Shown here: positions 7,389 through 48,554 of the stretch, in pieces
Position numbering within the stretch: position 1 is the first letter of the stretch
Layout of the letters: each line of letters begins with the position of its first letter
IMG/VR virus record: IMGVR_UViG_3300024252_000004
Location: 248,001-312,000 of that record
DNA length: 64,000 nucleotides
Direction: 5' to 3' (one strand)
The notes under the pieces: generated by a model
The model's input: the letters and a program-made list of their open reading frames with translations, nothing else
Told to the model about the DNA's origin: nothing
The model's database searches: none
Program-made: the position numbers and the translations under genes

Positions 7389-7464
7389 AGGACTGTAGCT
7401 CAGTTGGGAGAGCGCCTGCTTGACGTGCAGAAGGTCATCGGTTCAATCCCGGTCAGTCCTACCG
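7389..7464 (+). tRNA. tRNA-Val(GAC)
   Basis: AGGACTG/CAGTCCT acceptor, loop TT-GAC-GT, ends ACCG. Confidence 0.88.
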
Positions 7465-7745
7465 AGAGTTTTGAATGAAGAGAAACTGGTATCACAAATG
7501 TGTGCGAAAAAAATATAAGCCGTATCCATGGATACTTTGCTCTCTGTGCCAAAAAAGAAAACTTGATGTGCTTTTAACTAAAGAAGAAGCCGACGAGCTT
7601 AACAGAAAGCTCAAACTGGAGAAGTAATGTTTTACCTTAGTAATCGAAATATGAACGTGGCCTAACGAAAGCGATTAGGTCACATACGCCTAAACTTGCA
7701 GCTACATTTTTTTTGATTAACAGTTTATACAATAAGGTAATTACA

Positions 7746-24290: not shown

Positions 24291-25716
24291 GTTTGATAAG
24301 AGACAGCTAAAGAAGCTTTCTGAAATGAGAGCAGAAGGTGTCGATCCTTATCCCGTGGGGGAAAGCGGTGTGATGCCTCTGTCCGTAATTGATGGGCTAA
24401 GAGAGTTCTCGATGGGAGTTCTTGAGGGAACTGATCCTGTAAGAGTATTCGGAAGAGTTCGTTTTAAGAATGAAATGGGAAAGCTTGGGTTCGGAAGGAT
24501 CGAAGATGATGGCGGCCGAGTACAGATATGTGTTCGAAAGAACGAAGTATCTCCGGAAGCTTTCAAGGCTTGGAAGAGACTGGATCTGGGTGACTGGGTT
24601 TATGTCTCTGGTACATATGGTCGTACACGTTCGGGCGAGCTTACGATCTTCGTAACGGATATTAGTCTTGCATCGAAGTGTGTCTCCCCTATGCCTGATA
24701 AGCTGTCCGGCTTCACGGATGTAGAGCAGGAGTACCGTAAGAGGTATCTTCATCTTGCTGTATCGTCTGAGGCAAGGGACCTGTTTAAGCGCAGGTCCAA
24801 CACAGTCTCTCTCATGAGAAGGATGCTTGAGGGTCGAGGATTCATGGAGGTAGAGACTCCTATGCTCCACTCCATTCCTGGCGGAGCTTTGGCTAAGCCA
24901 TTCGTGACGCATCACAATGCACTTAATCAGGAAATGTTTCTTAGGATTGCTCCAGAGCTTCATCTGAAGAGACTGTTGGTTGGCGGATTCCCCAGGGTAT
25001 TCGAGATTAACAGATGCTTTAGGAATGAGGGAATTGGAACTAAGTACAATCCTGAATTTACTACGGTTGAGCTTTACCAAGCTCATGCAACATATGATGA
25101 CCTTATCGAATTGATCTCGATTATTGTTTCAGAGCTTGGACAGTTTGCTTCGTCAGACAATCCTGTGGACTTTGATAACATTACGCGAATCAGATTCGAT
25201 GATGCCATTCGGAATCTTGGGATTGAAGATCCTTGGAACGTCGATCAGCTAAGGGCATTCTGGGTTGCTAACCGTGGAGAGAGCGAAAGCTTGCCGGATA
25301 CTGTTGGTGATTGGTATGATATCATCTTCGATGCATTCATTCAGGATACGCTAATTGATCCTACCTTTATCACTAACCATCCTTCCGAGACTTCACCTCT
25401 CGCAAGAAAGACTGATGGAGACTCAAGGACTGTTGATAGGTTCGAGCTTTACATTCGAGGCATGGAAGTGTCTGATGGATGGACAGAGCTTAATGATCCT
25501 GTTGAGCAGGCTGAGAATTTCGTTCAGCAGCTTGCACGAAGAGAGGGCGGGGATGAAGAGGCTATGCTTTTTGATGAGGATTTTGTAAGAGCATTGAGTT
25601 ATGGTATGCCACCAGCAGCAGGAGTCGGACTTGGTATTGACAGGCTGATGATGGTACTTTGTAACAAGAAGAGCATTCGTGACGTAATCCTATTCCCTAC
25701 TCTACGTAGGGAATAG
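24283..25716 (+). CDS. lysS: Class II lysyl-tRNA synthetase
   Basis: OB domain, GFMEVETPML, LRIAPELHLKRLLVGG, FRNEG, GMPPAAGVGLGIDRL. Confidence 0.96.
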   Translation: MFEFDKRQLKKLSEMRAEGVDPYPVGESGVMPLSVIDGLREFSMGVLEGTDPVRVFGRVRFKNEMGKLGFGRIEDDGGRVQICVRKNEVSPEAFKAWKRLDLGDWVYVSGTYGRTRSGELTIFVTDISLASKCVSPMPDKLSGFTDVEQEYRKRYLHLAVSSEARDLFKRRSNTVSLMRRMLEGRGFMEVETPMLHSIPGGALAKPFVTHHNALNQEMFLRIAPELHLKRLLVGGFPRVFEINRCFRNEGIGTKYNPEFTTVELYQAHATYDDLIELISIIVSELGQFASSDNPVDFDNITRIRFDDAIRNLGIEDPWNVDQLRAFWVANRGESESLPDTVGDWYDIIFDAFIQDTLIDPTFITNHPSETSPLARKTDGDSRTVDRFELYIRGMEVSDGWTELNDPVEQAENFVQQLARREGGDEEAMLFDEDFVRALSYGMPPAAGVGLGIDRLMMVLCNKKSIRDVILFPTLRRE

Positions 25717-35324: not shown

Positions 35325-35415
35325 AGGACTGTAGCTCAGTTTTTGGTTAGAGCGCTCGCCTGATAAGTGAGAGGCCACTTGGTATACGTTGGTTCAAATC
35401 CAACCAGTCCTACCA
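35325..35415 (+). tRNA. tRNA-Ile(GAU) with a 16-nt variable region
   Basis: Loop CT-GAT-AA; variable AGGCCACTTGGTATAC. Confidence 0.85.
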
Positions 35416-35427
35416 TAAGGAAATGAA

Positions 35428-36425
35428 ATGCTTACTATTGATCAAGTTAGAAAGCTAAAGCGTGGCGATAAGGTTGTGGATACCTACGGAAAGGTTTATG
35501 ACTTTGGATATATTTCCCAAACGAATGCTGCCGTAGTTTACGATGAAGGCGAATACAATATGCAGGATGCTTCAGCTTTCAGACTACTTTCTGACAAAGA
35601 GGTTTCTGAAAAACCATTCTATAAGCTGAGGATCAAATGATAAACAAAATCGATTTTAGCAAAATCCCTAAAGAAGACCTATCTGTTTACGAACTATGGG
35701 TTGTGGCAACGTGGTCAGGGAATCCTTATACCGATGATCCTGGGAGTTGGTATATTGAAGATGGTCTGTATCTAAAAAAGGAATCCGCCATTCTTGCTGC
35801 CTCAGTAAGGGGCGTCCGTAAGGATCAAGTTATGAGTCTGAGCGATTTCATATCGAAATGCAATAGGGGTTACTAATGGATTTGTGGCTACATCTGATGG
35901 AATGCAGTTACCCGGAGGGTTGCACTTGCGGCACCTCCGCATACAATGCTTTGGCAGAAAAAGTTGCTGAGCAGCAGTCTCTTATGAGAGAAGCTGCCAA
36001 AGCCTTGTCTGACTGGAACAACGGACAAGGGGTGGATGAAGATTTGGAGCTAATAAAGAAGCTTCGAAGTTAAAATGGGCTGCCCAAATTGTGGTGGAGA
36101 ATCATATCTGACGACTTATCGAGCGAGATACCCTCGTGCAGGTAAGAGTCTTTTGGTTAAGTCAAAATGTATGATGTGTTCATCCTGTAGGACCCGGATA
36201 GGTCCTTTCAAATTCTTGACACCAGCGTTGGCAAATGAAAATGATGCTAACGCCGAGATAGAATGGGAAAGAAAATATAATGAGAAGATGCCTCCAGAAT
36301 ATCCGATGGGTCGTATAAGAAAGATTATGCGAACAGAGGAAGGTAAAAGGCGTGTAGCTGAAGCTTTTGGAAAAGCTTTGTACAAAGAAGTAGAGAAAAC
36401 CTCTAAGGAGAGTAAAGATGATTAA
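35428..36425 (+). CDS. Four small hypothetical ORFs
   Basis: ORF track. Confidence 0.55.
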
Positions 36426-36789
36426 TCAGAGCGATGTTGTTGAATACCTAAAGAACGTTAGCGTTATTGAACTTAGAGGTCTTATCGGGACTCTGGAGGA
36501 TGAGCTTGGAGTTAAGATTCCAGAATACACAGCACCTTCTCAGTACGATCTCGGTTTTGGTGGCGGAGAGGTAGAGCAGACCGAGTTTACCGTTGTCCTT
36601 CAGGGCTTTGAGGGTAAGAAGGTTGCACTGATTAAGGTCGTGCGAGCACTTACAGGTCTCGGTCTAAAGGATGCAAAGGTCGCGGTAGAGTCCGCTCCTT
36701 ATGTGATTAAGGAAGGCGTTGATAAGGGCGTAGCAGAAGAGGTTGCCGCTTCTATGAGAGAGGTTGGTGGCTTGGTAGACATTGTATAA
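36418..36789 (+). CDS. rplL: Ribosomal protein bL12 (L7/L12)
   Basis: EQTEFTVVL, KVALIKVVRALTGLGLKDAK, APYVIKEGV. Confidence 0.95.
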   Translation: MINQSDVVEYLKNVSVIELRGLIGTLEDELGVKIPEYTAPSQYDLGFGGGEVEQTEFTVVLQGFEGKKVALIKVVRALTGLGLKDAKVAVESAPYVIKEGVDKGVAEEVAASMREVGGLVDIV

Positions 36790-36983
36790 TGTTGAATGAA
36801 GCCATCGCAGAAGCTCTTGACGCGCCTTATAAACAGGCGCGTCAAGAGGGAGCAGAGGAAGAGAGAAAAAAGATCGCTGACTGGTTGAGAGAAACCAGCA
36901 AGCACAGTAAGATAGCAAGTACCTTGCTGCGATTAATGGCTGATGAAATTGAGTCTGGCGATTATGGCAAGGGTTAACAATTT

Positions 36984-37057
36984 TGGAGATTAGTTTAATC
37001 GTAAAATAGGTGGCTCTGACCCGCCCGTTACTGGTTCAAATCCAGTATCTCCAGCCA
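36984..37057 (+). tRNA. tRNA-Gln(CUG), copy 2 (D-loop lacks GG)
   Basis: TGGAGAT/ATCTCCA acceptor, loop CT-CTG-AC. Confidence 0.8.
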
Positions 37058-37074
37058 TCATCATAGGTGATACA

Positions 37075-37577
37075 ATGAAGATCGATATGGAGATTCTTAA
37101 GAGTCGAGTCAAAGGGACAGTAAACTTTTCTTTTTTCAGAGCAGGACAGCTCTGGTATGTATGTGAGGACGGGTGGGAATTTCCTATTCCTGTCGAAGAT
37201 ACGGGCAATGCACAGGGAAGCTCTCCCACTTTCTCTGCTCAGATGAAGGGCATTTATATGATGCGCTGGGTAAAGAAGGCTATGGAAGCAGAACTACAAA
37301 GGGATAGTGAGTGAGCATTTTTTCTAAAGTTATTGGCGAGAATATCTTTTTTAAACCAGAATTGTATCCGAGCGGAAATTGCTATGCTCATTATCCTTTG
37401 TCAACAAGGGATGTGAGTATTATATTGGAATATGATACGGGAAGATTTATCTATTACAAAATGAGACCAAGTGGATATGTTACAGGTGATCATATTTGTG
37501 CTGGGAAATTTTCGTCATACCTTTCCGAAAAGGAAAAGAAGTCATTTATTGAAATGTTGGAAAAGATCGAATCGTAG
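37075..37577 (+). CDS. Two hypothetical ORFs (37075-37314, 37311-37577)
   Basis: ORF track. Confidence 0.55.
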
Positions 37578-37645
37578 CTCAGTCCGGTAAGAGCACTCGG
37601 CTGATACCCGAGGGGTCGGTAGTTCAAATCTACCCGGTTCGACCA
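37568..37645 (+). tRNA. tRNA-Ile(GAU), canonical body
   Basis: CGAATCG/CGGTTCG acceptor, loop CT-GAT-AC. Confidence 0.88.
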
Positions 37646-37657
37646 TTAAAATGGGAG

Positions 37658-38564
37658 TTGGTTATGTCTAAACTGTTGAAAAAAAGACCCACTAAGCCAA
37701 GGGCACCAACTGAACCAAAAGAAATTTTGTCTTCGTATTCGTCAAAAACAATATACAGTTCATCTATTGAAGGTAGCGAGATTTTGGAACTCATGAAAGA
37801 GTGTAATTGTAGTATTACAGATTTATCTTTTCTCTTTTATGGAGACGACAACTATTCTTGTGACGAGATAGAAATAAGTATTAACGCTCCGCTAATGAAT
37901 AACAAGTATTCTGAGCAGATGGTTGTCTACGAGAGTAAGCTTGAAATCTATCACAAAAAGATGGAAATTTTCACGGCAAAGCTTTCTCTGTGGAATGAAC
38001 AGAAGAAGCAAAGAGATGACGAGGCAAAGGCAAAGAAAATTGAAGCTCTTGAGTATAAGCTATCTCAGCTAAGGAAGTAGTTTGACTCGCCTTAGTGACA
38101 TACTCGAACGAATATCTGCGAACCCTTACAAGACTATGTCTACTCCGAAGCCCTATGGGAAGTCGGATGGAGAAAGGCTTGCGGGAGAGTTCTACCTTCA
38201 ACTTAAGAAGCTTGATTGCATTCGCGGAATTGGATCGGGCATTCTTGAGATCATCGGAACAGATTATGTTTTGATGGTAAGAGGCACTAAGAGCACAGCA
38301 GAGTTGTTTTTTGCCAACAGGGTTTACATCAAACAGGCAAGGAAGCAGTCCCATGAGGAATCAGTAAGTCTTGATGCAGCCTTTCGTCTCTCTAAAGTGA
38401 ATGATGAATTCGATGAATTCTTAGCAATTCCACATTTCTTAGATGCTATGGAGGAAATGCCTGAAGAGTTGCAGGGTTACATCGTAACTAACATTCCGGA
38501 CTTTGCAGATTATGATGTTTCTGATAGGGTTAGAAAGAATTCTGAGTGGTTGAAAAACGTATAA
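37658..38564 (+). CDS. Two hypothetical ORFs (37658-38080, 38082-38564)
   Basis: ORF track. Confidence 0.55.
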
Positions 38565-38582
38565 TGCTCCCATGAGGTGAGC

Positions 38583-39458
38583 ATGAAACCAGTAGTTCTT
38601 TTTGATATGGATGGCACATTAACTGAGCCAAGAAAAACAGTAGAAGCTCCGATGCTTCGGGCGTTAGAGACGCTGATGCAATACGCTGTAGTAGGCATTG
38701 TATCCGGCAGTGATTACGATTACATCTATCAACAGATGGAACTTGATAAAAATGATTTAAAAGATGTTTTGATTTATCCTTGCAATGGGACAAAGAGATA
38801 TGTCTATGATCAAGTTAAGAAACGTTGGGAAAATACGTTTTCTGTCGATATGAAAGAGGAGATCGGGGGCGAGAAGCTTTATAGTTTAATGGAGCTACTT
38901 TTAGATTGGCAGCTATTCTATCTTGAATCTGCAAAGAAAAATGGTTTCAAGACGCCCCTTACGGGTTTGCACTTACAGAACAGAGGCTCCATGATTAACT
39001 GGTGCCCAATTGGACGAGGCGCAGATCACGACGAAAGGAAATTGTTTCAGGACTATGATGCAAATACTTCTTGGCGAGAAGAGACCCTTCCCTTGTTGGA
39101 AGATGAAATCGGACTAAGAGTAGAAGGAGTAACAGTTGTCAAAGGCGGATCAACATCATTCGACATCTACCCAGACGGATGGGATAAAAGATTTGTCAAA
39201 AGATTCCACGAAGGACAAGAACTCTATTTCGTTGGAGATCGATGCGAAAAAGGTGGGAACGATTACGAGCTTTACGCCGATCTTAAAAGATCCAAAGAAA
39301 GTCGCACCTTTGAGCGCAAACAGCTATTCTTTCCCTGGTCTAAAGTCAATCAAGATGAGTGCAAATATCAAGATTCTTTTAACACCGGATCTCCGGAAGA
39401 AACAAGCAGGATCATTGAAGAGGATCTCATCCCGCGTATCGTTAAGGCGCGAGTTTGA
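38583..39458 (+). CDS. Phosphomannomutase-like HAD hydrolase (PMM2 type)
   Basis: FDMDGTLT, VSGSD, NRGSMINWCPIGR, GGSTSFDIYPDGWDK, FVGDRCEKGGNDYE. Confidence 0.88.
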   Translation: MKPVVLFDMDGTLTEPRKTVEAPMLRALETLMQYAVVGIVSGSDYDYIYQQMELDKNDLKDVLIYPCNGTKRYVYDQVKKRWENTFSVDMKEEIGGEKLYSLMELLLDWQLFYLESAKKNGFKTPLTGLHLQNRGSMINWCPIGRGADHDERKLFQDYDANTSWREETLPLLEDEIGLRVEGVTVVKGGSTSFDIYPDGWDKRFVKRFHEGQELYFVGDRCEKGGNDYELYADLKRSKESRTFERKQLFFPWSKVNQDECKYQDSFNTGSPEETSRIIEEDLIPRIVKARV

Positions 39459-39501
39459 GGAATGTCAAGATGAAGTGACAGAGCGCATAGGGTATTTTCA
39501 A

Positions 39502-39894
39502 ATGAGCGAGAAAACACTTAAGCCTATTGAACCTATTGATGATATGGTTATGACCATTATCGCTGACCTTAAGGAACTTGATTGTGTTACAGAGGTAATG
39601 GAATCTGGGTGGGAGGTTGGTTATAGGATTCAAGGAACGCCTTTGACTCTTATGGTGGCTCACGATGACATCAAGCCAACATTTCTATTTGTGAGAACAG
39701 AAATCTCAGAGGATCTTTTTAACTCATTTTGGGTTGATGACATGAATACAAAAGACCCAAACAAGTTGAGCCTTTATGTTCCAGTTCGCAAGCTATTCGA
39801 TTTGGTAGATTTGCCAGAAGAAATGATTGAGTTTTTGGCGGTCAGGATTTCAATGTTTGTTGATGGAGATATCTCCGAGCAGCAAGACTTTTAG
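39502..39894 (+). CDS. Hypothetical protein
   Basis: In-frame ATG within track ORF 39136-39894. Confidence 0.55.
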   Translation: MSEKTLKPIEPIDDMVMTIIADLKELDCVTEVMESGWEVGYRIQGTPLTLMVAHDDIKPTFLFVRTEISEDLFNSFWVDDMNTKDPNKLSLYVPVRKLFDLVDLPEEMIEFLAVRISMFVDGDISEQQDF

Positions 39895-40175
39895 TCCTCG
39901 TCTTTATCTTCTTTCTTTTCTTTTGGAGCTTCGCCACCAAAGAGCTTTTCCATAAGCTCAGCAAAGTCGGAGGCATCCTCTGCTTCTTCTGGCATTTCTT
40001 CGCCATGACTATGTTCACATATATCAAGCGTAGGCTCATCGGGCATAGGAGATAGTCCCAAAGCAGATGCAATTTCTGCTGGATCTACTCCTTCTAAAAT
40101 CAAAATCTCTTGAGCCTCTTTTTTGAAATTAAGGCTGTAGAGGTTTCTGCTTAAACTTACAAGTTTAGTGTACAT
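39891..40175 (-). CDS. Hypothetical acidic protein, isolated on the minus strand
   Basis: SD AGGAG then MYTKLVSLSRNL. Confidence 0.65.
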   Translation of the reverse strand: MYTKLVSLSRNLYSLNFKKEAQEILILEGVDPAEIASALGLSPMPDEPTLDICEHSHGEEMPEEAEDASDFAELMEKLFGGEAPKEKKEDKDED

Positions 40176-40227
40176 AGTACTGTCACTCCTACTAAGATTA
40201 AGTATAATAGTAGGACTGGAGGTTCTA

Positions 40228-40915
40228 ATGAATTCGATCATATTGGAAATTAAAGCTGCCGAAGGCGGCACAGATGCAAAGCTCCTTGTTGATGAACAGT
40301 TGGCCATTTATAGGAGATACTGTTCTCGGAGGTCTCTTTGAGTTAGCTCTCTTAGATTCCAGAAGCGGTTTTATCAGATGCAGAGTCAGCGGCAAAAACG
40401 TCAAAAAACATTTTAGGCATGAGCCTGGAGGCCACAGATGGCAAAGGGTTCCTCCGACAGAGAGACGAGGAAGGGTTCATACTTCTACGATCACTGTCGC
40501 TGTCCTACCGGAAGTAACTGAATCTGAAGTTAAGATTAGCGAAAAAGATTTAGAATGGAAAGCCTTTAGGGGTTCTGGTCCCGGCGGTCAGCATAGAAAC
40601 AAAACTGATTCTGCTGTGTCGCTTCACCATAAGCCTACTGGAATCAAGATCCGTTCTGAATCTCAAAAGAGTCAGAAGCAGAATAAGGACACCGCTCTTG
40701 CAATATTGAGAGCGAGGTTGCATTCTGAGCAGAGAGAGTCTCAGTCTTTGCGACGCAGTAATATGAGGAAGAGCCAAGTGGGCTCAGGTATGCGCGCCGA
40801 CAAAATCAGGACGATCAGGTTGCAGGACGGACAAGTTACGGATCACAACACTGGAAAAAGAATCTCTGCGAAAAAATATTTGCGCGGAGACTTGGAAGGT
40901 CTATTTGAAAAGTAA
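40228..40915 (+). CDS. Class-1 peptide chain release factor (RF1-type PxT), programmed +1 frameshift at 40336-40341
   Basis: MNSIILEIKAAEGGTDA; GGAGG-TCT-CTT-TGA; +1 frame GGHRWQRVPPTE.RGRVHTS, GSGPGGQHRNKTDSAV, KIRT. Confidence 0.88.
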
Positions 40916-41105
40916 AGAAGCGATTGCAAAAGTGATGTTTTGGAGAATCGTAATTTCGATTCCGTTAAGCACGATAGTTACATATTTGTATTACGGTCAA
41001 CTCTTCAAGGCTATTGGGTTTGTCATCTTGATGAACGTAATGATGACGGCGGCACACTTCGCTTTTGAAAAGGTTTGGCCTAAGATTTGGAGGAAGCTTG
41101 AGTAG
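40905..41105 (+). CDS. Small membrane protein
   Basis: Two hydrophobic helices. Confidence 0.55.
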   Translation: MKSKEAIAKVMFWRIVISIPLSTIVTYLYYGQLFKAIGFVILMNVMMTAAHFAFEKVWPKIWRKLE

Positions 41106-41203
41106 AAAAGAACACTGCCGGGTTTATTGATCCTGAAATTGCCATCAGACTTGGGGCCAATCGTCAAGGTTTTGGCGGGAACTGATAAAGTTTAGAGCAA
41201 AAT

Positions 41204-41232
41204 TTGCTAAATTTCTCGCAAGATGGTATATA
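41204..41232 (+). promoter_or_regulatory. Sigma70-type promoter, repeated family
   Basis: TTGCTA-N17-TATATA with TGn. Confidence 0.65.
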
Positions 41233-41293
41233 TGATTCACGGGATCGAAACGTGCCGACGTAGTTTGGATGCCATCTTCGAAAAACAAAATAA

Positions 41294-41386
41294 TGCGGGG
41301 TCGACTAGTCTGGCCCATGTCACCAGTCTCATAAGCTGGCTCTGAGTATACCTCAATCGTTGGTTCAAATCCAACCCCCGCACCCA
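41294..41386 (+). tRNA. tRNA(CAU) with fMet-like acceptor, 19-nt variable arm and C73
   Basis: TGCGGGG/CCCCGCA acceptor, loop CT-CAT-AA, variable arm TGAG-TATAC-CTCA. Confidence 0.8.
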
Positions 41387-41398
41387 TAATAGGAAACA

Positions 41399-42315
41399 AT
41401 GAGCATCTATAGAGTTCATCACATAGATCTTTTGAATGTTCTGACTTATCTTTCTGCTTTTGATAATAATGTACTTGAAAAAATACATTGTGATGGAGAG
41501 CAGGGAAGAGTAGTAATCTTTGTAGATCCTAAAGAAATACCCAAAAAAGATCTTGATCTTATTTTGGATTGCAATTGCGAAGTGGACGAGGAAGGCTTTT
41601 TCATCCTTAAACCCACGATCATTATTGCAAAATAGTTATGTTGTTGGTACGTGGGGACATGGTGAAACTGGATATCATGTTAGCCTTCTAAGCTTAAGTT
41701 CGGGGTTCGAGTCCCTGTGTCCCTGCCATCATCTTTTTGGAGTTTTCAAATGAAGTTAGAAAAGACTCAATTGAAAGCAGGATGGACTGTGGCTCTTAGG
41801 CCGGAAGATCCTACGAGATTCCGACTTATCAACCCTGATGGGTTTGGAGTAGCCTTAATTGGCCTCAAAGGCGAATGGTGGGGCACAAGCTATAATCTGT
41901 GGGATTCCCAAGGTGAAGAACATGGATATGAGGCGATAGACCCACCTGACATGCTGAGTGCGGTCAGAAATTGTGCAGCACACTGTGGTGCTTTAAAATA
42001 TGCGAAATGTGAGGAGTTGTAATGGAATGGATTGATATTGCCCACACGATGGGCCAACATAACTTTGACGATGTATCGATTTCCACATCGTCAACCACAA
42101 GTGTCATGAACCTTTCTAACGGTTGCCTCATGCGAGAGACCACTGTTACTGCACAAGGTAGTGTAACCACTTCTCCTATTCACCTTTCCGGCGTCCGCTA
42201 TGAGAACGGAGTGCTAAGGGCTCTTACCATGAAGGAAATGCTTGGCGACGAAATGGGCGAAATGGCAGAAAAAATGTCTGGACTTACCGGAATGCTCGGA
42301 AAGTTCGGAAAGTAA
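41399..42315 (+). CDS. Three small hypothetical ORFs (41399-41635, ~41749-42022, 42022-42315)
   Basis: ORF track. Confidence 0.5.
41653..41728 (+). tRNA. tRNA-Arg(UCU)
   Basis: Loop CT-TCT-AA, GCCA end. Confidence 0.88.
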
Positions 42316-42319
42316 TCAT

Positions 42320-42395
42320 AGCTGAGTAGCTCAATCGGTAGAGCAACAGGTTCATATCCTGTAGGTTGTAGGTTCAAGCCCTATCTCAGCTACCG
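42320..42395 (+). tRNA. tRNA(CAU), elongator Met or Ile2
   Basis: AGCTGAG/CTCAGCT acceptor, loop TT-CAT-AT, ends ACCG. Confidence 0.85.
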
Positions 42396-42452
42396 TAAAG
42401 TAGAAACATAGTTTGTGTTTCATTTAAACAATCATCAAAGGGGAGAATCATA

Positions 42453-42570
42453 ATGATCACCATCTTCAACACTGACCGACGTAGTACGCTCATGTTTAGT
42501 TTAAGGACTATTCATGTCTAAGTGTGCTCTCTCGGTTAAATAAAGAATTAGCTTTCGCCGGAGAGAGCAC
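42453..42570 (+). promoter_or_regulatory. Leader uORF (22 aa) followed by a long hairpin
   Basis: SD GGAG, MITIFNTDRRSTLMFSLRTIHV*, stem GTGCTCTCTCGG/CCGGAGAGAGCAC. Confidence 0.5.
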
Positions 42571-42591
42571 GTTCACCCACAGGAGGTTAGC

Positions 42592-43647
42592 GTGTATTAC
42601 GGTGATGAAAAGAAGAAAGAAATTATGAGAAGCATTCTTCCGTCCAAATGGGCAAAGGGTGCAAGAGAAGACAAAAGAGATCTCAACAAAAAGGTGCGAA
42701 GAACAGCTAAGAATGCTCTTCGTCATATTCGGGATGCAGAAGATTGGGATGACTCAAGCTTTGATTTCTGGGATGACGGACAGGATGAGCGTAGCTCGAT
42801 TGTGTGGAACAGACGAGGGGCTGACAAGCTCTCTCACTTCATGCGCTGGGCCGAGCACACTGCCAAGGATATTCCCGATGGGGAAAAGATGGGGTACATC
42901 AAAGGACTACTTCCCGGTAAGGGAGTAATCTTTGATCACGCTTGTGGTCACCTTGAGCACCTCGATGGCTTTGATAGCGACACCTATATCTGGAGTTCTT
43001 ACTGGAGAAGAAGAGATAAGGATGTTCTTAGCAGAGCAGATCTAATTCGTCTTCTTGAGAAGGTTTGTGAGGTTCGCAAGTTCCACGGTTACCTTAACGA
43101 TGCAATTAAGAAGCGTCATAAGAAGACTTATTGGCGTCGCGTTCTTCGCATCGAAGAGTACAATCATTATAAGACTGCGCGGATTGGTGGCGAAATAGTG
43201 AAGGTTAGTCCTCCCGAAGTAAGGGTAAGGTACCATACTGACTCTCAGGATAAGACCATTGCACCTCGTCAGCTTATGGGTATGTACGACGTTGAGAATT
43301 TCGTTGATGATATTATTTGCGTTTCCAAGTGCAAAGAGTGGATTGATAAGTCTGGGTACCGAAGTCGGGTCAGAAATCCAAACGTAAGATATTCTTGGGA
43401 GCAGGGTTCCTACCGGTTTATGGACGGGAAGGTTCCCAATCCTGATTACCATCCCGAATGGATTGAGACTGTCAAATACTTCATCGAAGATTTTCTTAAA
43501 AATACTCATAAGCTTAAGGGGTTCAGCGTCTTTACTTCGTTCAGAAGAAGAACTTATGATTGGGAGAACTCAGATCCGCGCAGGTCTAAATTTGTCTGGA
43601 GGACGGACAGAGTTAAGCGTAGCTACGTCTACGATTGGAAACTTTAA
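42592..43647 (+). CDS. Basic hypothetical protein
   Basis: SD AGGAGG, GTG start. Confidence 0.75.
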   Translation: MYYGDEKKKEIMRSILPSKWAKGAREDKRDLNKKVRRTAKNALRHIRDAEDWDDSSFDFWDDGQDERSSIVWNRRGADKLSHFMRWAEHTAKDIPDGEKMGYIKGLLPGKGVIFDHACGHLEHLDGFDSDTYIWSSYWRRRDKDVLSRADLIRLLEKVCEVRKFHGYLNDAIKKRHKKTYWRRVLRIEEYNHYKTARIGGEIVKVSPPEVRVRYHTDSQDKTIAPRQLMGMYDVENFVDDIICVSKCKEWIDKSGYRSRVRNPNVRYSWEQGSYRFMDGKVPNPDYHPEWIETVKYFIEDFLKNTHKLKGFSVFTSFRRRTYDWENSDPRRSKFVWRTDRVKRSYVYDWKL

Positions 43648-43686
43648 TTTGCTTTATCCTTTACTACCCAGTAGTAAAGGATATAT

Positions 43687-43763
43687 GGCCCCATAGTCTA
43701 ATTGGATAAGGCACTTGATTACGAATCAAGAAACTGCAAGTTCGAATCTTGCTGGGGCTACCA
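43687..43763 (+). tRNA. tRNA-Arg(ACG)
   Basis: Loop TT-ACG-AA; preceded by a perfect 13-bp hairpin at 43655-43683. Confidence 0.9.
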
Positions 43764-43780
43764 TTGCAAATGAGGGAATA

Positions 43781-45548
43781 ATGAGCATTGAAGATCACGA
43801 ACTCTTATCACTACCATTCATCAAAAGGGTGTATAATCCTAATGAGAAAGTGGGATATAAGAGGTTCAAAATAGTTGAAACCAATTATGGTTTTGACTAT
43901 AAGATCCGAGGAGACATTTGCTCCCCCATTATGCGGTTTCGAAAAAACGGATATAACTTCAAAGGTAGAAAGGGACCTGTTGATTTCCAAGTTGTATTAG
44001 ATACTGTCCCTGAAGAATATATTGCGTTTCTCATCTTCTGCCAGGAAGTATTTGATTATGAAGAATCTGAAAATTGGTAAAGAAATGCTGTACGCACCCA
44101 TAGTTTAATCGGCCAAAACGCTTCCTTGGTAAGGAAGTAATATGAGTTCAAGTCTCGTTGGGTGCTCCATACAGCAAAGTATGGAGAGAAGAATTGTTAT
44201 TTGAATACGCTGATCTTGAAAATTATAATGAAATGATTTCGGAAATGGGGCAAGAAGAAAGGATAGGCTTTGAAGACCTGTTCGGTTTTTTTGAAATAGA
44301 CATAGTAGAACATAGGGATGCTTTGAAAAAAGAACTCACCTATACTGGAAGCGATGTTGTGTATCACAACTATGAGGTAAAAGGGACAAACATTATATTT
44401 TGCCTGCTTAAGGCAGATTCCGAATCAATGAAGCACGTTTTCAAAAAAATTGAGTTTTTCGAAAAGGGTCTTCATATTAAGGTAGTTCCATTTGAAATGG
44501 TCATTGATCATCTTCCTGAAAATATGTGCGAACATCTCATCATACAGATAGGGAGGCTATTCCGTGAAGACAGAATTTGAACATCTTATGGATGATATAG
44601 ACAAATCACAGTTCTTCGTTAGAGATTCCATTTACTCTATTGAGCCAATTTGGTACTATGCAGATTTCGAGATTAAGGCGAAGAATAGGAAATTTAGTAG
44701 CTTTGCTTATCTTCTAATGAAGATCGAGCTAACTGGAAATATAACTTGGCTTGTGACTAATAGGCCAAATGGTATTTCTTTCAAAAATAATCACGGGCTC
44801 AAATCTGTTTCTAAAGAATACGCTATCGATGTCTTGTCGGAAGATGAAAGTGTTCTTTCTAAATTTGCAGAACTAACTCCCGTTATATTTAAGTGATCCA
44901 TGTCTAAAAACTCAAAGCTATACGTAACAGGAAAGACCGAAGACGGCAGACCAATGATTGGTGGCTGGTTCGCTATGGTGGCGACATATGGTATCCCAAT
45001 AGATACAGTTATCAGTTATCTGGACGACTCGGGGCACATGCCAGATTGGTTAGAGTTTTACTTTACCGCCGTTAGTGAGGGATGGAACGCAAAGCGTACC
45101 ATAGGGAGACTGAGGCAAGCCGTTGCCGACGTTTACGGACCAGAGTTCAGAGAAGGCTGGTCTGAAAGGTTCGAACCAATTCTAAAAAGATTAGAGGTAG
45201 AAAATGAGCGAGAAAGAAAGTGTTCTGGAGACTCTGGCTGAAGAGCTTAGAGCAAATCCCGAAGGAGCTATTATGCTTCTTGAGGCAATGACAAATGTTG
45301 TGAGGCCATGGGAAAGTTTAAGAAGCGAAGGTCAGTCTGTCATGCACGCATATAGAAGGCTTACCGCGATGGGTGTAGAGGTTGCTTTAATCGAAAGCAG
45401 CGCACCCACATGGATTCTAACTATTGGAGGCGAACGTTTTACAGGCGGCAAAGTCTTCAATAGAAAGGGTGCCGAAGTTGAAGCTAAGGCTTTGCTTGAT
45501 GCAGAGTTAGCAGAGCGAGGTTTTGTTCTCATGGATTCGCAAGCATGA
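43781..45548 (+). CDS. Five hypothetical ORFs (~43781-44080, within 44158-44580, 44564-44896, 44900-45241, 45204-45548)
   Basis: ORF track; starts adjusted to avoid the tRNA genes. Confidence 0.55.
44094..44169 (+). tRNA. tRNA-Thr(GGU)
   Basis: Loop TT-GGT-AA, U73-CCA. Confidence 0.9.
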
Positions 45549-45581
45549 TAAAAGCCGGGTAATCGGTTTTAGAAGCGAATT

Positions 45582-45610
45582 TTTCTAAATTTCTCGTAGG
45601 ATGTTATAGA
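45582..45610 (+). promoter_or_regulatory. Sigma70-type promoter, repeated family
   Basis: TTTCTA-N17-TATAGA with TGn. Confidence 0.6.
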
Positions 45611-45671
45611 AAAAATAGATACGGTTTTGCTTTTAACCTTCGTCATGCGTAGGATAAAAGCACCGTTTAAT

Positions 45672-45759
45672 GGGTCGTTATCCCGTAGGGGCAGCGGTGG
45701 AGACTGTAAATCTCCTGTCATTATTGACTCGGTTGGTTCGACTCCAGCACGGCCCACCA
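45672..45759 (+). tRNA. tRNA-Tyr(GUA)
   Basis: Loop CT-GTA-AA, long variable arm, ACCA end. Confidence 0.9.
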
Positions 45760-45850
45760 TATTTGTGAAGCGATACATCGATAAACACTGACCACGGCTA
45801 CGGGCGGGATGATGAAGGGGCAGTAGCCTGTCCCAAATCGCTCACAAATA
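45760..45850 (+). ncRNA. Candidate structured RNA with an H-type pseudoknot
   Basis: Closing stem TATTTGTGA.GCGAT/ATCGCTCACAAATA; GGCTAC/GTAGCC; GGGATG/TGTCCC. Confidence 0.6.
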
Positions 45851-45857
45851 TACTTTC

Positions 45858-45921
45858 GGGACAGTCTCTTGTAGGAAAGATTACGCGCGTGACATCGGTT
45901 CAATTCCGATCTGTTCCACCA
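45858..45921 (+). ncRNA. 64-nt anticodon-less tRNA-like RNA with alanine identity
   Basis: GGGACAG/CTGTTCC (G3-U70), A73-CCA, T-arm ATCGG-TTCAATT-CCGAT; only 29 nt between acceptor and T-arm. Confidence 0.75.
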
Positions 45922-46433
45922 CTGAATCGTCCATCACCTGATAGGAAGTGATCAACTTCGTGACAGGTCGGACAAACAATCTCTAAGTTCTCAATCGAGT
46001 TATTCTCTCTATTGCGATCTTTATGATGAACTTGTAGAACTTCAGGATGCTTATCGTATCCGCAATGAGAGCATATCTGTTCAAGATGCTCTTTTGCAGT
46101 TTTGCGATAATCCTTTCGGTTATCAGTATAGTGCGGCGGATGAATTTCTTTTATCCCTCCTATCCTTTGTGCAATATCTTTGCAATTTCTTGAGCAAAAA
46201 ACAAATCCGCTTTTAGATGCAGCAATCTTAGAGGCAGACCTGTAAAAGTCTTTATCACAAATAGCACAAACACAATTTGGCTTTTGTATCTTCGGATTTT
46301 TCTTTCTCCATTCAAAAGAGCATTTGCGATTGCAAAATTTTGCGTTTCCTCTGTTTAATTCTTTAATTTCTGCATCAAATTGCGTATAACAATTTAAGCA
46401 ACTTTTCTTAATGGTTCTACCTTTGTAAGACAT
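45900..46433 (-). mobile_element. HNH homing endonuclease with N-terminal Zn-finger repeats
   Basis: FCNRKC, FCSRNC, CSHCG...LQVHHKDRNRENNSIENLEIVCPTCH. Confidence 0.88.
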
Positions 46434-46454
46434 AATAAATTCCTTTAATTATAT

Positions 46455-46530
46455 GGGGCCTTAGCTCAATTGGGAGAGCGCGACATTTGCAATGTCGAGG
46501 TCGCGAGTTCGATCCTCGCAGGCTCCACCA
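46455..46530 (+). tRNA. tRNA-Ala(UGC)
   Basis: GGGGCCT/AGGCTCC acceptor, loop TT-TGC-AA. Confidence 0.93.
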
Positions 46531-46589
46531 TGCAAATCAATTATACTCCACCGCAGAGTATAACACATAATTAAAGTAAGACTACACAT

Positions 46590-46609
46590 TCTCCCTTAGC
46601 TCAGTTGGT
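46590..46609 (+). pseudogene. 5' fragment of a disrupted tRNA gene
   Basis: TCTCCCT-TAGCTCAGTTGGT ends at the HNH stop codon. Confidence 0.6.
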
Positions 46610-47094
46610 TAATTCCATTTTGGTTTTAACTTATAGTGTTCTTCTCTGTGGCAGTTTGCACACAGCATGACGCATTTGTCAAGTTCAGCTTTAATGGTAT
46701 CCCAGGCATAAGTATTCCCAGAGCCAATGCCGAAATCTTTCTCGTTTGGTTCTAAATGGTGAAAATCAAATGCATCAATACATTTGTCATATCCACAATA
46801 CTCGCACTTTTCTCCTTTATATTCTACGGCTTTAATCTTACACTGCCATCTTCTTTTTTGCACATAGTACTTGTTCTTACACTTTTTTGAGCAAAATTTT
46901 CCTGAAGATGGCAAGTCACACAAATGCCATGTGCATTCCAAAGCTTTTGACTTTTCTTTATTTTTTGGAGAAGTTGATAGTCCAAATTTCTTAAGCCAAT
47001 GACGAACATTTGTTTGCGAGCAAGATAGCTCTTTTGCGATTTCTCTGGTAGAATAATTATTATCAACTAATAACTTTAAAGTTTCTAATTCCAT
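46609..47094 (-). mobile_element. HNH homing endonuclease with N-terminal HTH
   Basis: STREIAKELSCSQTNVRHWL; CEYCGY...FDFHH...KCVMLCANCHREEH. Confidence 0.88.
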
Positions 47095-47134
47095 AGTTCA
47101 CCTCATGTAATTATATGAGGTTAATAATAGATGA

Positions 47135-47221
47135 GCTACTGTGGCCGAGCGGTTGAAGGCAGCAGGCTGTTAACCTGCCTGGGAAACCACATCATAGGTT
47201 CAAATCCTATCGGTAGCGCCA
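47135..47221 (+). tRNA. tRNA-Asn(GUU) on a class II-like body
   Basis: Loop CT-GTT-AA; variable arm TGG-GAAA-CCA; G73. Confidence 0.85.
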
Positions 47222-47248
47222 AATTTAATAAGAGGCTGAACATGAGCC

Positions 47249-47497
47249 TTGCAGGGAGAGCCAATTATTAAAGAATCAGATAAGAATAATGGAGTATGCT
47301 ATCCGGCAACGTCGATCAAAGTGATTCCCCTTGTTGAGGGAATTAGATTGCGGCCGAAGATGTACGGTTTGACAGAAGATCAGGTATCCAATATGAGTGA
47401 TCAGATGATCAAAGATTGGTACGAAGATTGTGAAAACGTATGCGAGCATGATTTAGATATTGCGAGAGTGTCGGACACCTTTGATCCCAGCGGGTAG
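47249..47497 (+). CDS. Small protein carrying a GyrB/ParE N-terminal-like motif
   Basis: YPATSIKVIPLVEGIRLRPKMYG. Confidence 0.5.
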   Translation: MQGEPIIKESDKNNGVCYPATSIKVIPLVEGIRLRPKMYGLTEDQVSNMSDQMIKDWYEDCENVCEHDLDIARVSDTFDPSG

Positions 47498-47671
47498 GGG
47501 TCGAGATAACGCGGTCAAGTAGAGTTCCCAAAGGGCTGTTTATGATACGGTCACAATCGAACGACCTAGAGTTATACCTGATTTGAATTCGGGCAATGGG
47601 CTGGCCAATAGTCCTTAGACGTAATCCTGTTGAAGTCGTCGCAGGTCCCACTTGAGGGTTGTTTTGGACAT

Positions 47672-47747
47672 GGGTGCTTAGTGTCAACGGCAAGCACGAT
47701 TGGCTGTTAACCAATTAGTTTGGGTTCAAATCCCAAAGTACCCGCCA
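47672..47747 (+). tRNA. tRNA-Asn(GUU), canonical body
   Basis: Loop CT-GTT-AA, G73-CCA. Confidence 0.9.
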
Positions 47748-48053
47748 CAAAGTATCAAAAGGTTTTGTCATTATGAAAGAGATTTTTGGACCTTGGGTTA
47801 AGGCTGCAAGGTGTTTGGATTGCGACGACGGCTTTAAAAGCAAATGGAGTGCCTGGATTGAAGAAAGTGATTTTGATACAGAGGAAGAGATGTTGGGGCA
47901 AACTCTCATCTGCCGCTCATGTGGCTCGATATTCAAATGGCAAAAAGCTGTCGGAAGAAAAATCAAAACGTATAAAACATCTTGGATTTTTCTTGACAAA
48001 TTGGTTAAAAGCGAATGGGAATGGCGACACGAAGCTGTTCTGGAAGGAATAAA

Positions 48054-48473
48054 TTGAAAAGAGTTTATGTTGATATGGACGGAGTCCTTTGTGATTACGT
48101 TGCAAAATTTACAGAACTCCGTAACGAAGGAAACAAGTTTCCTCAGCAAAGCTTTGACTTCTTCAGAAGTATGAAGCCTATGCCATCGGCTCTTGCAGCT
48201 ATGGGAATACTATCTAAACATTTCGATGTTTGGATTTTGACTAAGCCTTCCTACAAAAACCCTATGTCTTATACAGAAAAGAGACTTTGGGTTGAGGACC
48301 ATCTTGGTCTGGATTGGTGTAAGAAGCTGATCCTTTGTCCTGATAAGGGATTGGTTATAGGAGATTATCTTATTGATGATTTCTTGTGGCCTGAATTTCA
48401 AGGTGAACAAGTTCATTTTGGTTCAAATAGATTTCCAAATTGGAGATCGGTAATAGATTATATGCGCCCGTGA
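48054..48473 (+). CDS. 5'(3')-deoxyribonucleotidase (NT5C-like HAD)
   Basis: YVDMDGVLCD, WILTKP, EKRLWVEDHLG, GDYLIDD. Confidence 0.88.
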   Translation: MKRVYVDMDGVLCDYVAKFTELRNEGNKFPQQSFDFFRSMKPMPSALAAMGILSKHFDVWILTKPSYKNPMSYTEKRLWVEDHLGLDWCKKLILCPDKGLVIGDYLIDDFLWPEFQGEQVHFGSNRFPNWRSVIDYMRP

Positions 48474-48554
48474 GCCGAGTGGTTGATGGCCCCAGACTCT
48501 TAATCTGGTACAGGTAGTGCTGCAACGTAGGTTCGAATCCTACCGGGCGTACCA
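48464..48554 (+). tRNA. tRNA-Lys(CUU) on a class II-like body
   Basis: Loop CT-CTT-AA; 18-nt variable region; A73. Confidence 0.85.

Follow-up and report, generated by a model that had tools for sequence, protein, structure and literature searches.

The four tRNA genes considered here, with the anticodons Ile-GAU, CAU, Asn-GUU and Lys-CUU, raise the question of why a phage would place class-I anticodons on bodies with the extra hairpin arm normally reserved for serine, leucine and tyrosine tRNAs. They lie in a 64,000-nt stretch (hereafter, the window; positions 248,001 to 312,000 of IMG/VR record IMGVR_UViG_3300024252_000004) of the genome of a 395-kb marine phage. A preliminary description made from the sequence alone reported 15-19-nt variable regions in the four genes and a canonical counterpart for each, and proposed that these are either nuclease-evading tRNAs or deliberate mis-decoders, inserting Ser at Asn codons and Leu at Lys codons.

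Four tRNAs with long variable regions

We first asked whether the four genes are genuine tRNAs, and the observation was confirmed. ARAGORN called full tRNAs at 35325-35415 (Ile-GAU, 91 nt), 41294-41386 (CAU, 93 nt), 47135-47221 (Asn-GUU, 87 nt) and 48464-48554 (Lys-CUU, 91 nt), all on the plus strand, and Rfam model RF00005 matched each over model positions 1-71, at 60.4, 43.3, 59.4 and 53.5 bits, respectively, against a gathering score of 29. The Infernal alignments place an 11-15-nt insertion exactly in the variable region, so that there is no alternative short-arm fold. The variable regions are 16, 19, 15 and 18 nt long, with 3-4-bp hairpins; the acceptor/T-stem layout is the ordinary 7/5, the anticodon loops are the canonical CU-NNU-AA, and CCA is encoded in all four. 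Single-sequence folding is not by itself better than chance (z = -0.7 to -2.5), but the arms are validated by homologues, with compensatory changes in all three arm pairs across 22 long-arm tRNA-Asn, and a U46-A55 to A46-U55 double change in a variant from a seawater-metagenome contig.

The individual genes differ in their bodies. The tRNA-Ile(GAU) has an Ile-like, class-I body (4-bp D stem) with a 13-nt insertion in the variable region, A73, and U12-A23 and C29-G41 as read from the sequence, and a homologue in viral contig locus L086 has the same arm motif, AGGCCA..TGGT..AC. The CAU tRNA has a 4-bp arm stem and an initiator-like body, with A11:U24 and GCGGGG at acceptor positions 2-7, and shares the 5' TGCGGG and the AGTCTCATAAGCT anticodon arm with the annotated initiator tRNA-fMet of phage T5, but deviates from an initiator in having a paired U1-A72 and C73; its family also appears in viral contigs. 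The tRNA-Asn(GUU) has the arm UGG-GAAA-CCA followed by a CAUC tail, a Ser-type D arm, G1-C72, C2-G71 and G73. The tRNA-Lys(CUU) has the arm CAG..CUG followed by a CAAC tail, G1.U72, C2-G71 and A73, has homologues in viral loci L204, L209, L101 and L116, and reads AAG, the preferred Lys codon of the phage (3.97% of codons, against 2.67% for AAA).

The canonical short-arm counterparts are also present on the plus strand: tRNA-Ile(GAU) at 37568-37645, a CAU tRNA at 42320-42394, whose anticodon loop UUCAUAU resembles that of the T5 elongator tRNA-Met, tRNA-Asn(GUU) at 47672-47747, and a tRNA-Lys at 50983-51059. The anticodon of the last is UUU, not CUU, so that, in correction of the preliminary description, it is an isoacceptor rather than a duplicate. 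The long-arm and short-arm Asn tRNAs share G1-C72 and G73, and the two Lys tRNAs share G1.U72 and A73.

Amino acid identity

We next examined which amino acids these tRNAs are likely to carry. In the mis-decoder reading, SerRS would charge the Asn-GUU tRNA and LeuRS the Lys-CUU tRNA through their class-II shape, as with nematode nev-tRNAs or allo-tRNAs. In favor of this possibility, the long arm is the main SerRS determinant and SerRS ignores the anticodon (PMC9976931), the Asn tRNA has G1-C72, G73, C11-G24 and a D arm 100% identical to that of an E. coli tRNA-Ser, so that some serylation cannot be excluded, and the Lys tRNA has A73. However, G73 and A73 are also the cognate discriminators of tRNA-Asn and tRNA-Lys, and tRNA-Ser and tRNA-Leu determinants are mostly absent: the arm is 3 bp with 4 unpaired 3' nt, whereas tRNA-Ser arms in the same data set average 5.5 bp with about 1 unpaired nt, and E. 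coli Leu identity needs A15-U48, but the Lys tRNA reads G15/C48. Moreover, AAG, AAY, AUY and AUG together make up about 16% of the phage's own codons. Conversely, the determinants of cognate identity, namely, the anticodon plus G73 for Asn, U35/anticodon plus A73 for Lys, and the anticodon plus A73, with U12-A23 and C29-G41, for Ile (PMC9976931), are all present. The exception is the CAU tRNA, whose C73 fits none of Met, fMet or Ile.

The window also encodes, on the plus strand, a full asparaginyl-tRNA synthetase at 7713-9140 (475 aa as the listed ORF, although the true start may lie downstream) and a full class-II lysyl-tRNA synthetase at 24232-25716 (494 aa), both of which hit PF00152. The AsnRS scores 597.7 bits against NCBIfam NF003037 (cut-off 414), and its best solved relative is the AsnRS 6pqh (E = 1e-118), with the class-II catalytic motifs aligned; the LysRS scores 538.3 bits against NF001756 (cut-off 468) and 494.5 against TIGR00499 (cut-off 427.6), and its best solved relative is the LysRS 6wbd (E = 4e-124). 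No SerRS, LeuRS, IleRS or MetRS was found in the phage genome. Taken with the class-level data below, these observations do not support the mis-decoder reading, which we consider very unlikely.

The presence of these enzymes suggests another possibility, that the arm is an identity mark of private synthetase-tRNA pairs, letting the phage enzymes charge their own tRNAs or keeping host enzymes off them, and so insulating phage translation. Exactly the two amino acids that have a phage synthetase have the two long-arm tRNAs with class-II-like bodies; furthermore, the relative G034 has LysRS, AsnRS and a long-arm Lys-CUU, G058 has a long-arm Asn pattern 2.8 kb from its AsnRS, and relatives G001-G004 lack both the synthetases and the long-arm tRNAs. 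However, only 2 of 49 viral records with long-arm Asn or Lys tRNAs hit PF00152, one of them weakly (E = 2.5e-5), 12 of the 14 records that are at least 90% complete have none, and only 1 of 10 AsnRS-bearing records has the long-arm Asn pattern. In addition, coliphages such as 4MG and Bas26 carry the tRNA, the phage enzymes align with ordinary AsnRS and LysRS without an extra domain, and there is no phage IleRS or MetRS for the other two tRNAs. This explanation therefore appears improbable.

A widespread class of long-arm phage tRNAs

To determine whether these tRNAs are isolated oddities, we ran two pattern scans of viral contigs, which yielded at least 266 distinct long-arm class-I tRNAs from 160 viral loci, mainly Asn, CAU, Lys, Ile, Thr, Cys and His. 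We found no paper describing this class. The discriminators follow the amino acid of the anticodon, matching those of the short-arm tRNAs of the same isotype: G in 76/85 Asn, A in 28/32 Lys, U in 10/12 Thr, U in 9/10 Cys and C in 5/6 His. Arm hairpins exceed shuffled controls, with stems of 4 bp or more in 54% against 24%. The arm geometry is tRNA-Tyr-like, not Ser-like, with a mean of about 3.5 unpaired 3' nt, compared to 3.1-3.2 for tRNA-Tyr in the phage data set, and stems averaging 3-4 bp; tRNA-Tyr itself, however, has the GUA anticodon and A73 and is recognized by TyrRS, whereas here the anticodons and discriminators belong to other amino acids. Most loci with a long-arm copy hold no short copy of the same anticodon (63 of 87 for Asn), so that the long-arm gene is the only copy seen in the stretch retrieved, although these loci are partial. 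The statement that long arms normally mark only Ser, Leu, Tyr and Sec tRNAs does not hold for phages.

The trait is common in phages, including laboratory coliphages. A long-arm tRNA-Asn homologous to that of the window matched 478 cultured-phage records (checked in 4MG, PM135 and Bas26), including Escherichia phage 4MG and other Seunavirus, Proteus phage PM135, T5-like Epseptimavirus such as Bas26 GreteKellenberger, and JD18-like Klebsiella phages. These direct homologues have the GUU anticodon, G73 and a 13-17-nt variable region forming a 3-4-bp stem with a GNRA loop, and 4MG has the same anticodon arm. They are annotated simply as tRNA-Asn (some as Cys, Asx, 'hypothetical protein' or nothing), and we found no paper that remarks on the arm. 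The stretches of 4MG, PM135 and Bas26 examined showed a long-arm Asn but not the set of four seen here, and the viral record that appears to be PM135 has no PF00152 hit.

A role outside translation, as decoys or sponges for tRNA-binding defense proteins, as primers, or as decaying pseudogenes, appears very unlikely. It has been raised that over-expressed viral tRNAs might inhibit the PARIS nuclease AriB by competition (PMC12409363), and the CAU tRNA has an odd C73 and the lowest Rfam score, but acceptor stems, T arms, anticodon loops, cognate discriminators and encoded CCA are all conserved, and all stems covary as in working tRNAs.

Possible function and origin of the arm

Together, these findings are best explained by working phage tRNAs that carry the amino acid specified by their anticodon, that is, Ile, Asn, Lys, and Met/fMet or possibly Ile2 for the CAU species, and that belong to a widespread phage class in which a class-I tRNA carries a short tRNA-Tyr-type extra arm, consisting of about 1 unpaired nt, a 3-4-bp stem, often a GNRA loop, and 3-4 unpaired nt, often CAYC. 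In this view, charging relies on the intact anticodon and discriminator, and the Asn and Lys species can also be served by the phage's own AsnRS and LysRS. The most likely benefit is that the phage copies become poor substrates for host tRNA-cutting defense nucleases that grip that region, while remaining usable by synthetases and the ribosome. The tRNA structures, the synthetase genes and the breadth of the class are shown by our analysis, whereas expression, processing and charging are inferred from sequence alone, no RNA run having been listed, and the benefit of the arm is likewise an inference. Class-II synthetases such as AsnRS and LysRS approach tRNA from the variable-loop side, so tolerance of the arm is assumed. 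We are fairly confident that these are cognate decoders, but defense evasion as the purpose of the arm is tentative, and the explanation as a whole is about as likely as not. The interpretation in the preliminary description is thus only partly supported: of its two readings, nuclease evasion remains a plausible hypothesis, whereas mis-decoding is not supported.

For the defense reading, AriB cuts E. coli tRNA-Lys(UUU), Thr(UGU) and Asn(GUU), with possible, perhaps indirect, cleavage products for His(GUG) and Pro(UGG), and it cuts at 40|41 while its second subunit contacts D-loop 16-17 (PMC12409363). This target list resembles the isoacceptors that have long-arm versions (Lys-UUU 13/76, Thr-UGU 12/66, His 6/43 and Pro-UGG 5/61, against none for Ala-UGC, Phe or Gln), although this bias was measured in loci selected for carrying a long-arm GAU, GUU, CAU or CUU tRNA, and Cys (9/39) and CAU (70/153) are not known AriB targets. 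The genome also carries T4 Rnl1-like and Rnl2-like RNA ligases, the type T4 uses to repair cut tRNA. However, the Lys-CUU tRNA keeps the UAAUC sequence that precedes the AriB cut site, and phage T5, whose tRNA-Asn helps against PARIS, has a short-arm tRNA-Asn, so the arm is not needed for that escape. Phage anti-defense tRNAs, namely, T5 tRNA-Lys, Thr and Asn against PARIS, T5 tRNA-Tyr against retron-Eco7, and anticodon-loop variants in mycobacteriophages (PMC11464382, PMC12409363, PMC11555353, PMC10264068), are likewise copies of the very isoacceptors that defense nucleases cut (Lys, Asn, Thr), altered so that the nuclease fails while translation continues, but the known escape changes are point substitutions in the anticodon stem-loop or D loop, and an added arm has not been described as an escape device.

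Alternatively, the arm could be a neutral relic, arising by remolding of duplicated class-II tRNA bodies (Tyr- or Ser-like) or by insertion, and kept only because the core now needs it to fold, without benefit beyond an ordinary tRNA supply. Consistent with this possibility, the Asn and Lys tRNAs are each other's nearest relatives in the genome (64 identical positions) and have class-II-type D arms, the arm geometry equals that of tRNA-Tyr, and GUU, GUG and GCA are one step from the Tyr anticodon GUA. However, the Ile tRNA has a plain class-I body with an inserted arm, and the trait recurs in many isoacceptors and unrelated phages, being the majority form for Asn in the selected sample (85 of 129), persists in the 478 cultured-phage records, and is strongly skewed by isoacceptor. 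We therefore regard a neutral origin as possible but doubtful.

Among known class-II-shaped tRNAs with unusual anticodons, nematode nev-tRNAs (PMC3333845) have anticodons that are not those of Ser, Leu or Tyr, but they are Leu-type bodies charged with leucine, and so mis-decoders, and are restricted to nematodes, whereas here the acceptor and discriminator features follow the amino acid of the anticodon and the arm is Tyr-type. Bacterial allo-tRNAs, found in metagenomes, also combine a long variable arm with non-Ser anticodons, but have an 8/4 or 9/3 acceptor/T-stem layout and a Sec-like origin (PMC5389517). Allo-tRNAs are serylated. The reverse case, short-arm (type-I) tRNA-Leu, occurs in a cellular genome, that of Streptomyces (PMC6614811), demonstrating that the long arm can be present or absent within one amino-acid family without a change of identity, and phages carry it as well (45 of 124 tRNA-Leu), which shows that the arm is evolutionarily plastic.

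Four long-arm tRNA genes with class-I anticodons

The window (bases 248001-312000) lies on a single 395,127-bp contig, 43.8% G+C, with 44 tRNA genes and a tmRNA, which represents a jumbo phage that recurs in more than 20 seawater metagenome runs. Within the window, ARAGORN identified 36 tRNAs, of which four are 87-93 nt long and have class-I anticodons, namely Ile-GAU at 35325-35415, CAU at 41294-41386, Asn-GUU at 47135-47221 and Lys-CUU at 48464-48554. The Rfam tRNA model matched each of these from position 1 to 71 at 43-60 bits, against a threshold of 29. An alternative canonical fold, which the preliminary description had named as the outcome that would refute its observation, was not recovered: Infernal aligned all four genes over the whole model, with an 11-15-nt insertion located exactly in the variable region. 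The variable regions are 16, 19, 15 and 18 nt long with 3-4-bp stems, in agreement with a long-variable-arm (class-II) architecture, in which a variable region longer than about 10 nt forms a stem-loop between the anticodon and T arms, and all four genes encode CCA and have the anticodon loop CU-NNU-AA. Each has a 7-bp acceptor stem and a 5-bp T stem, in contrast to the 8/4 or 9/3 acceptor/T-stem layout of allo-tRNAs. Short-arm tRNAs are present at 37568 (Ile-GAU), 42320 (CAU), 47672 (Asn-GUU) and 50983, the last of which is Lys-UUU, an isoacceptor rather than a duplicate of Lys-CUU. The observation made in the preliminary description is confirmed.

Homologues support the extra arm

Folding each sequence alone was not convincing (z = -0.7 to -2.5), and we therefore searched for relatives. 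A megablast search with 14 kb of the sequence for near relatives among cultured phages returned only one 76-nt tRNA-Pro match. Phages related at 53-59% protein identity carry 35-45 tRNAs each, but all their long tRNAs are Leu, Ser or Tyr, and they encode no class-IIb synthetase, so that they provided no covariation data. BLAST searches of the CAU and Lys tRNAs against E. coli genomes, and of the CAU tRNA against cultured phages, returned no match. Contigs from the seawater runs gave identical sequence plus one informative variant, a version of the window Asn tRNA from a single run in which U46-A55 has become A46-U55; no RNA run was listed among those holding the sequence.

We then scanned IMG/VR for a T-loop placed 22-30 nt after an anticodon loop carrying GAU, GUU, CAU or CUU. 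The two scans yielded at least 117 and 119 stretches, and 72 of 117 and 109 of 116 fetched loci contained tRNAs. Pooled, these loci gave 1,630 distinct tRNAs, including 266 class-I tRNAs with variable regions of 10 nt or more, among them 85 Asn-GUU, 70 CAU, 32 Lys, 20 Ile, 12 Thr-UGU, 10 Cys, 6 His, 6 Glu and 6 Pro, whereas none were found among 54 Ala-UGC, 47 Phe-GAA (48 Phe in all) or 57 Gln. Each of the four window genes has recognisable homologues in this set. The variable regions form hairpins more often than shuffled copies do, with stems of 4 bp or more in 54% against 24%. RNAalifold applied to 22 long-arm tRNA-Asn sequences (from the window, phage 4MG and 20 contigs) predicted the cloverleaf plus an arm helix in which all three pairs show compensatory changes, although these sequences had been picked for a regular arm call, so that the shuffle test is the unbiased one. 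GNRA loops do not distinguish the class, being as common in the arms of phage Leu and Ser tRNAs.

Predicted amino acid identity

In the preliminary description, Ser was inferred from G73 of the Asn tRNA and Leu from A73 of the Lys tRNA. However, according to the identity review PMC9976931, Asn identity consists of the GUU anticodon plus G73, a set that is sufficient when transplanted into a tRNA-Lys; Lys identity is U35/anticodon plus A73; and Ile identity is the anticodon plus A73, with the minor determinants C4-G69, U12-A23 and C29-G41. The same bases therefore fit the cognate reading, with GUU and G73 present in the Asn tRNA and CUU and A73 in the Lys tRNA. In the Ile tRNA, GAU, A73, U12-A23 and C29-G41 are present, but position 4-69 is A-U.

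Several results favour the cognate reading. The window itself encodes a full AsnRS (7713-9140; NF003037, 597.7 bits, cut-off 414) and a full class-II LysRS (24232-25716; NF001756, 538.3 bits, cut-off 468), both of which align end to end with solved enzymes, whereas the genome has no real hit for the Ser/Thr/Pro/Gly, Ile/Leu/Val, Met or Tyr/Trp synthetase families. The long-arm and short-arm tRNAs share acceptor features, G1-C72 and G73 for Asn, and G1.U72 and A73 for Lys. Across the 266 class members, the discriminator matches that of the short-arm tRNAs of the same isotype, including U73 for Cys and Thr and C73 for His, which neither SerRS nor LeuRS would be expected to favour. The codons concerned make up about 16% of the phage's own codons, with AAG being its preferred Lys codon, and in most loci the long-arm gene is the only copy of that anticodon in the stretch fetched.

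The geometry of the arm is also not Ser-like. The long-arm class-I tRNAs have a mean of about 3.5 unpaired nt at the 3' base of the arm and a mean stem length of 3.7 bp, compared to 3.1-3.2 nt and 3-4 bp for tRNA-Tyr, 2.0-2.2 unpaired nt for tRNA-Leu, and 1.1-1.4 nt and 5.2-5.5 bp for tRNA-Ser. A Ser-type arm has a long stem and at most about 1 unpaired nt at its 3' base, whereas the arm of the window Asn tRNA has a 3-bp stem and 4 unpaired 3' nt, compared to the 5.5 bp and 1.1 unpaired nt that phage tRNA-Ser average in the same data set. Of the remaining Ser features, the Asn tRNA has G1-C72 and G73, but the G2-C71 of tRNA-Ser is replaced by C2-G71. In the Lys tRNA, A73 is present, but the E. 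coli-type Leu determinant A15-U48 (PMC9976931) reads G15/C48. Conversely, nucleotides 6-27 of the Asn tRNA are 100% identical to the D arm of an E. coli tRNA-Ser in 5412 of 5426 genomes, so that a small possibility of partial serylation remains. Taken together, the interpretation in the preliminary description holds only in part, as deliberate mis-decoding is not supported, whereas nuclease evasion remains a hypothesis. The amino acid actually carried, and any function beyond decoding, are inferred.

The individual genes differ in their apparent make-up. The Ile tRNA is an ordinary Ile body with an inserted arm and an enlarged D loop. Its acceptor stem (AGGACUG/CAGUCCU) and the start of its D arm are identical to those of the tRNA-Val(GAC) at 7389-7463, suggesting duplication or gene conversion between tRNA genes of different identity. 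The Asn and Lys tRNAs are each other's closest relatives in the genome and have class-II-type D arms. The long-arm Ile and CAU tRNAs share an identical T arm (CGTTGGTTCAAATCCAACC; window 35375-35403 and 41343-41374), and both have the palindrome GTATAC inside the variable region, such that exchange of the 3' half between the two genes is possible.

The CAU tRNA belongs to a family with initiator hallmarks. Bacterial initiator tRNA-fMet has a mismatched 1-72, R11:Y24, G2-C71/C3-G70/G4-C69 and A73 (PMC9976931); three G-C pairs in the anticodon stem are a further feature. The window gene has A11:U24 and acceptor pairs 2-71, 3-70 and 4-69 as required by the formyltransferase, and shares its 5' end and anticodon arm with the annotated initiator tRNA-fMet of phage T5, but position 1-72, which is weak or mismatched in relatives, is a paired U-A, position 73 is an unexplained C, and only one of the three G-C pairs is present. 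An Ile2 role, which would call for lysidine modification of the CAU anticodon and A73, cannot be excluded, because the phage carries a 213-aa protein (G000:C1:207198-207707 of the phage contig, outside the window) that consists only of the TilS lysidine-synthetase catalytic domain (TIGR02432, 116.7 bits, cut-off 93.6) and lacks the C-terminal tRNA-binding domains of the bacterial enzyme; its predicted substrate could be either of the two phage CAU tRNAs or host tRNAs.

Distribution among phages and prokaryotes

Homologues of the Asn tRNA are annotated in Escherichia phage 4MG, Klebsiella VIK251, Cronobacter GAP31 and Enterobacter EC152. The 85-nt version from Proteus phage PM135 (locus L139, 908-992) matched 478 cultured-phage records over at least 80% of its length, including T5-like Epseptimavirus such as BASEL phage Bas26, JD18-like Klebsiella phages and Vequintavirinae. 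Most of these genes are labelled tRNA-Asn, but in several GenBank records the gene is unannotated, overlapped by a 'hypothetical protein' CDS, or labelled tRNA-Cys or tRNA-Asx. Phage T5 itself has a short-arm tRNA-Asn.

A search of 596 Gb of prokaryote genomes gave at least 120 hits, and 25 of 120 were long-arm tRNA-Asn. About half of these lie inside multi-tRNA clusters (up to 39 tRNAs in 8 kb), as in phage or mobile DNA, whereas nine are lone genes, several of them in archaeal MAGs. The lone 86-93-nt Asn-GUU calls on four archaeal MAG contigs (L279, L292, L328 and L344), from Thermoplasmata and other archaea, have a shared variable-region motif (..ACCGAGTGGTC) and may be intron-containing or otherwise unusual archaeal tRNA-Asn genes rather than members of the phage class.

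Full-text literature searches found no paper describing long-arm class-I tRNAs in phages, although this does not prove that none exists, especially in older T5-era or subscription literature. The nearest described tRNAs are the nev-tRNAs, nematode nuclear genes charged with leucine, and the allo-tRNAs, both of which are mis-chargers. The four genes are members of a widespread, apparently undescribed class of phage tRNAs, predicted to be cognate, with a Tyr-type extra arm, and are here accompanied by phage AsnRS and LysRS. Textbooks and annotation tools treat the long variable arm in bacteria and their viruses as a badge of Ser, Leu, Tyr and Sec tRNAs, and as a SerRS identity element, but phages routinely place such an arm on Asn, Lys, Ile, Thr, Cys, His and initiator-type tRNAs, apparently without changing what they carry. 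This bears on how synthetases, especially the class-II AsnRS and LysRS, tolerate or avoid a long arm, on how SerRS avoids charging these tRNAs, and on why phages carry tRNAs at all, a question now tied to immune nucleases that cut tRNA. The presence of homologues in easily handled coliphages and relatives (4MG, Bas26, PM135) makes the question directly accessible at the bench, and these tRNAs may also serve as natural scaffolds for orthogonal tRNA design.

Possible roles of the extra arm

What the arm is for can only be inferred. We first considered coupling to phage synthetases, but a general link is rejected, as only 2 of 49 records with long-arm Asn or Lys tRNAs have a class-IIb synthetase hit, one of them weak, and only 1 of 10 AsnRS-bearing records has the long-arm Asn pattern. 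The other of the two hits comes from the relative G034 (332 kb), which has LysRS, AsnRS and a long-arm Lys-CUU, together with the same HisRS-like fragment as the window. This fragment, a 196-aa ORF at 519-1109, matches only the N-terminal part of HisRS/HisZ (TIGR00442, 64 bits, well below the cut-off), lies about 1 kb upstream of the tRNA-His at 2051, and may be a truncated synthetase or a paralogue.

The best lead is immunity, although the parallels are circumstantial. The PARIS nuclease AriB cuts E. coli tRNA-Lys(UUU), Thr(UGU) and Asn(GUU) at 40|41, with possible cleavage products (perhaps indirect) for His and Pro, while its second subunit reads D-loop 16-17 and further contacts elsewhere are suspected (PMC12409363). 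This target list resembles the isoacceptors that carry arms, and the arm emerges a few nucleotides 3' of the cut. However, our sample was selected for four anticodons, Cys and CAU are not known AriB targets, and the Lys-CUU tRNA keeps the UAAUC sequence before the cut site. Moreover, T5 escapes PARIS with a tRNA-Asn that is short-armed, so that this escape cannot be taken as evidence that a long-arm tRNA-Asn works in E. coli. The phage also encodes a T4 Rnl1-like RNA ligase (45.7 bits), an Rnl2-type RNA ligase (84.8 bits) and a weaker second Rnl2-like hit (33 bits) (G000:C1:184405-185037 and 320736-321194 of the phage contig, and window 11024-11518), enzyme types that T4 uses to mend nuclease-cut tRNA. 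In addition, an NAD toolkit comprising NAD kinase, a bifunctional NMN adenylyltransferase/Nudix enzyme and nicotinate phosphoribosyltransferase is present (window 3423-4226, 17971-19050 and 19592-21097); such sets in phages are usually read as countering NAD-depleting defences.

In its boldest form, which is doubtful on present evidence but not excluded, the extra arm would be a general, previously unrecognised counter-defence device, directed against PARIS/AriB-like Toprim enzymes and other tRNases that clamp this face, while leaving the anticodon and discriminator free for the cognate synthetase. In this view, the shielded tRNAs of this phage would be backed by its own AsnRS and LysRS, giving a defence-proof Asn/Lys decoding module. 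A neutral origin is a serious rival, whereby class-II bodies were remoulded and the arm is retained for folding. This scenario is supported by the mirror case, as 45 of 124 distinct phage tRNA-Leu in the pooled viral loci have a short variable loop while keeping a class-II-type D arm, including both tRNA-Leu genes seen in the Escherichia phage 4MG stretch (locus L137, 916-993 and 3778-3854). For any function beyond decoding, defence evasion is the most attractive testable idea.

Other features of the tRNA complement

Two HNH homing-endonuclease-like genes on the opposite strand, at 45900-46433 (-) and 46609-47094 (-), sit just upstream of the long-arm tRNA-Asn. T5 also has HNH endonucleases interspersed in its tRNA region, and these may drive spread or shuffling of tRNA genes.

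We also examined possible stop-codon recoding, because the window carries an amber-suppressor-type tRNA (anticodon CUA, 54460-54537) and a 213-aa RF1-like protein (40274-40912) with PCRF plus RF-1 domains but lacking the N-terminal part. However, TAG ends 76 of 394 long frames, and reading it through gains less than reading through TGA or TAA, so that there is no sign of recoding and no other code is claimed. The relative G002 also has a CUA tRNA.

Outside the window, at G000:C1:211265-211338 and 214615-214688, ARAGORN called a tRNA with anticodon AUU (Asn) and one with an irregular anticodon loop, which may be degenerate or unusual tRNAs. Finally, a G1.U72 wobble closes the acceptor stem in many tRNAs of this phage, namely two Arg, two Lys, two Glu, the CUA suppressor, Leu-UAA and Leu-UAG, which is unusual for bacterial-type tRNAs.
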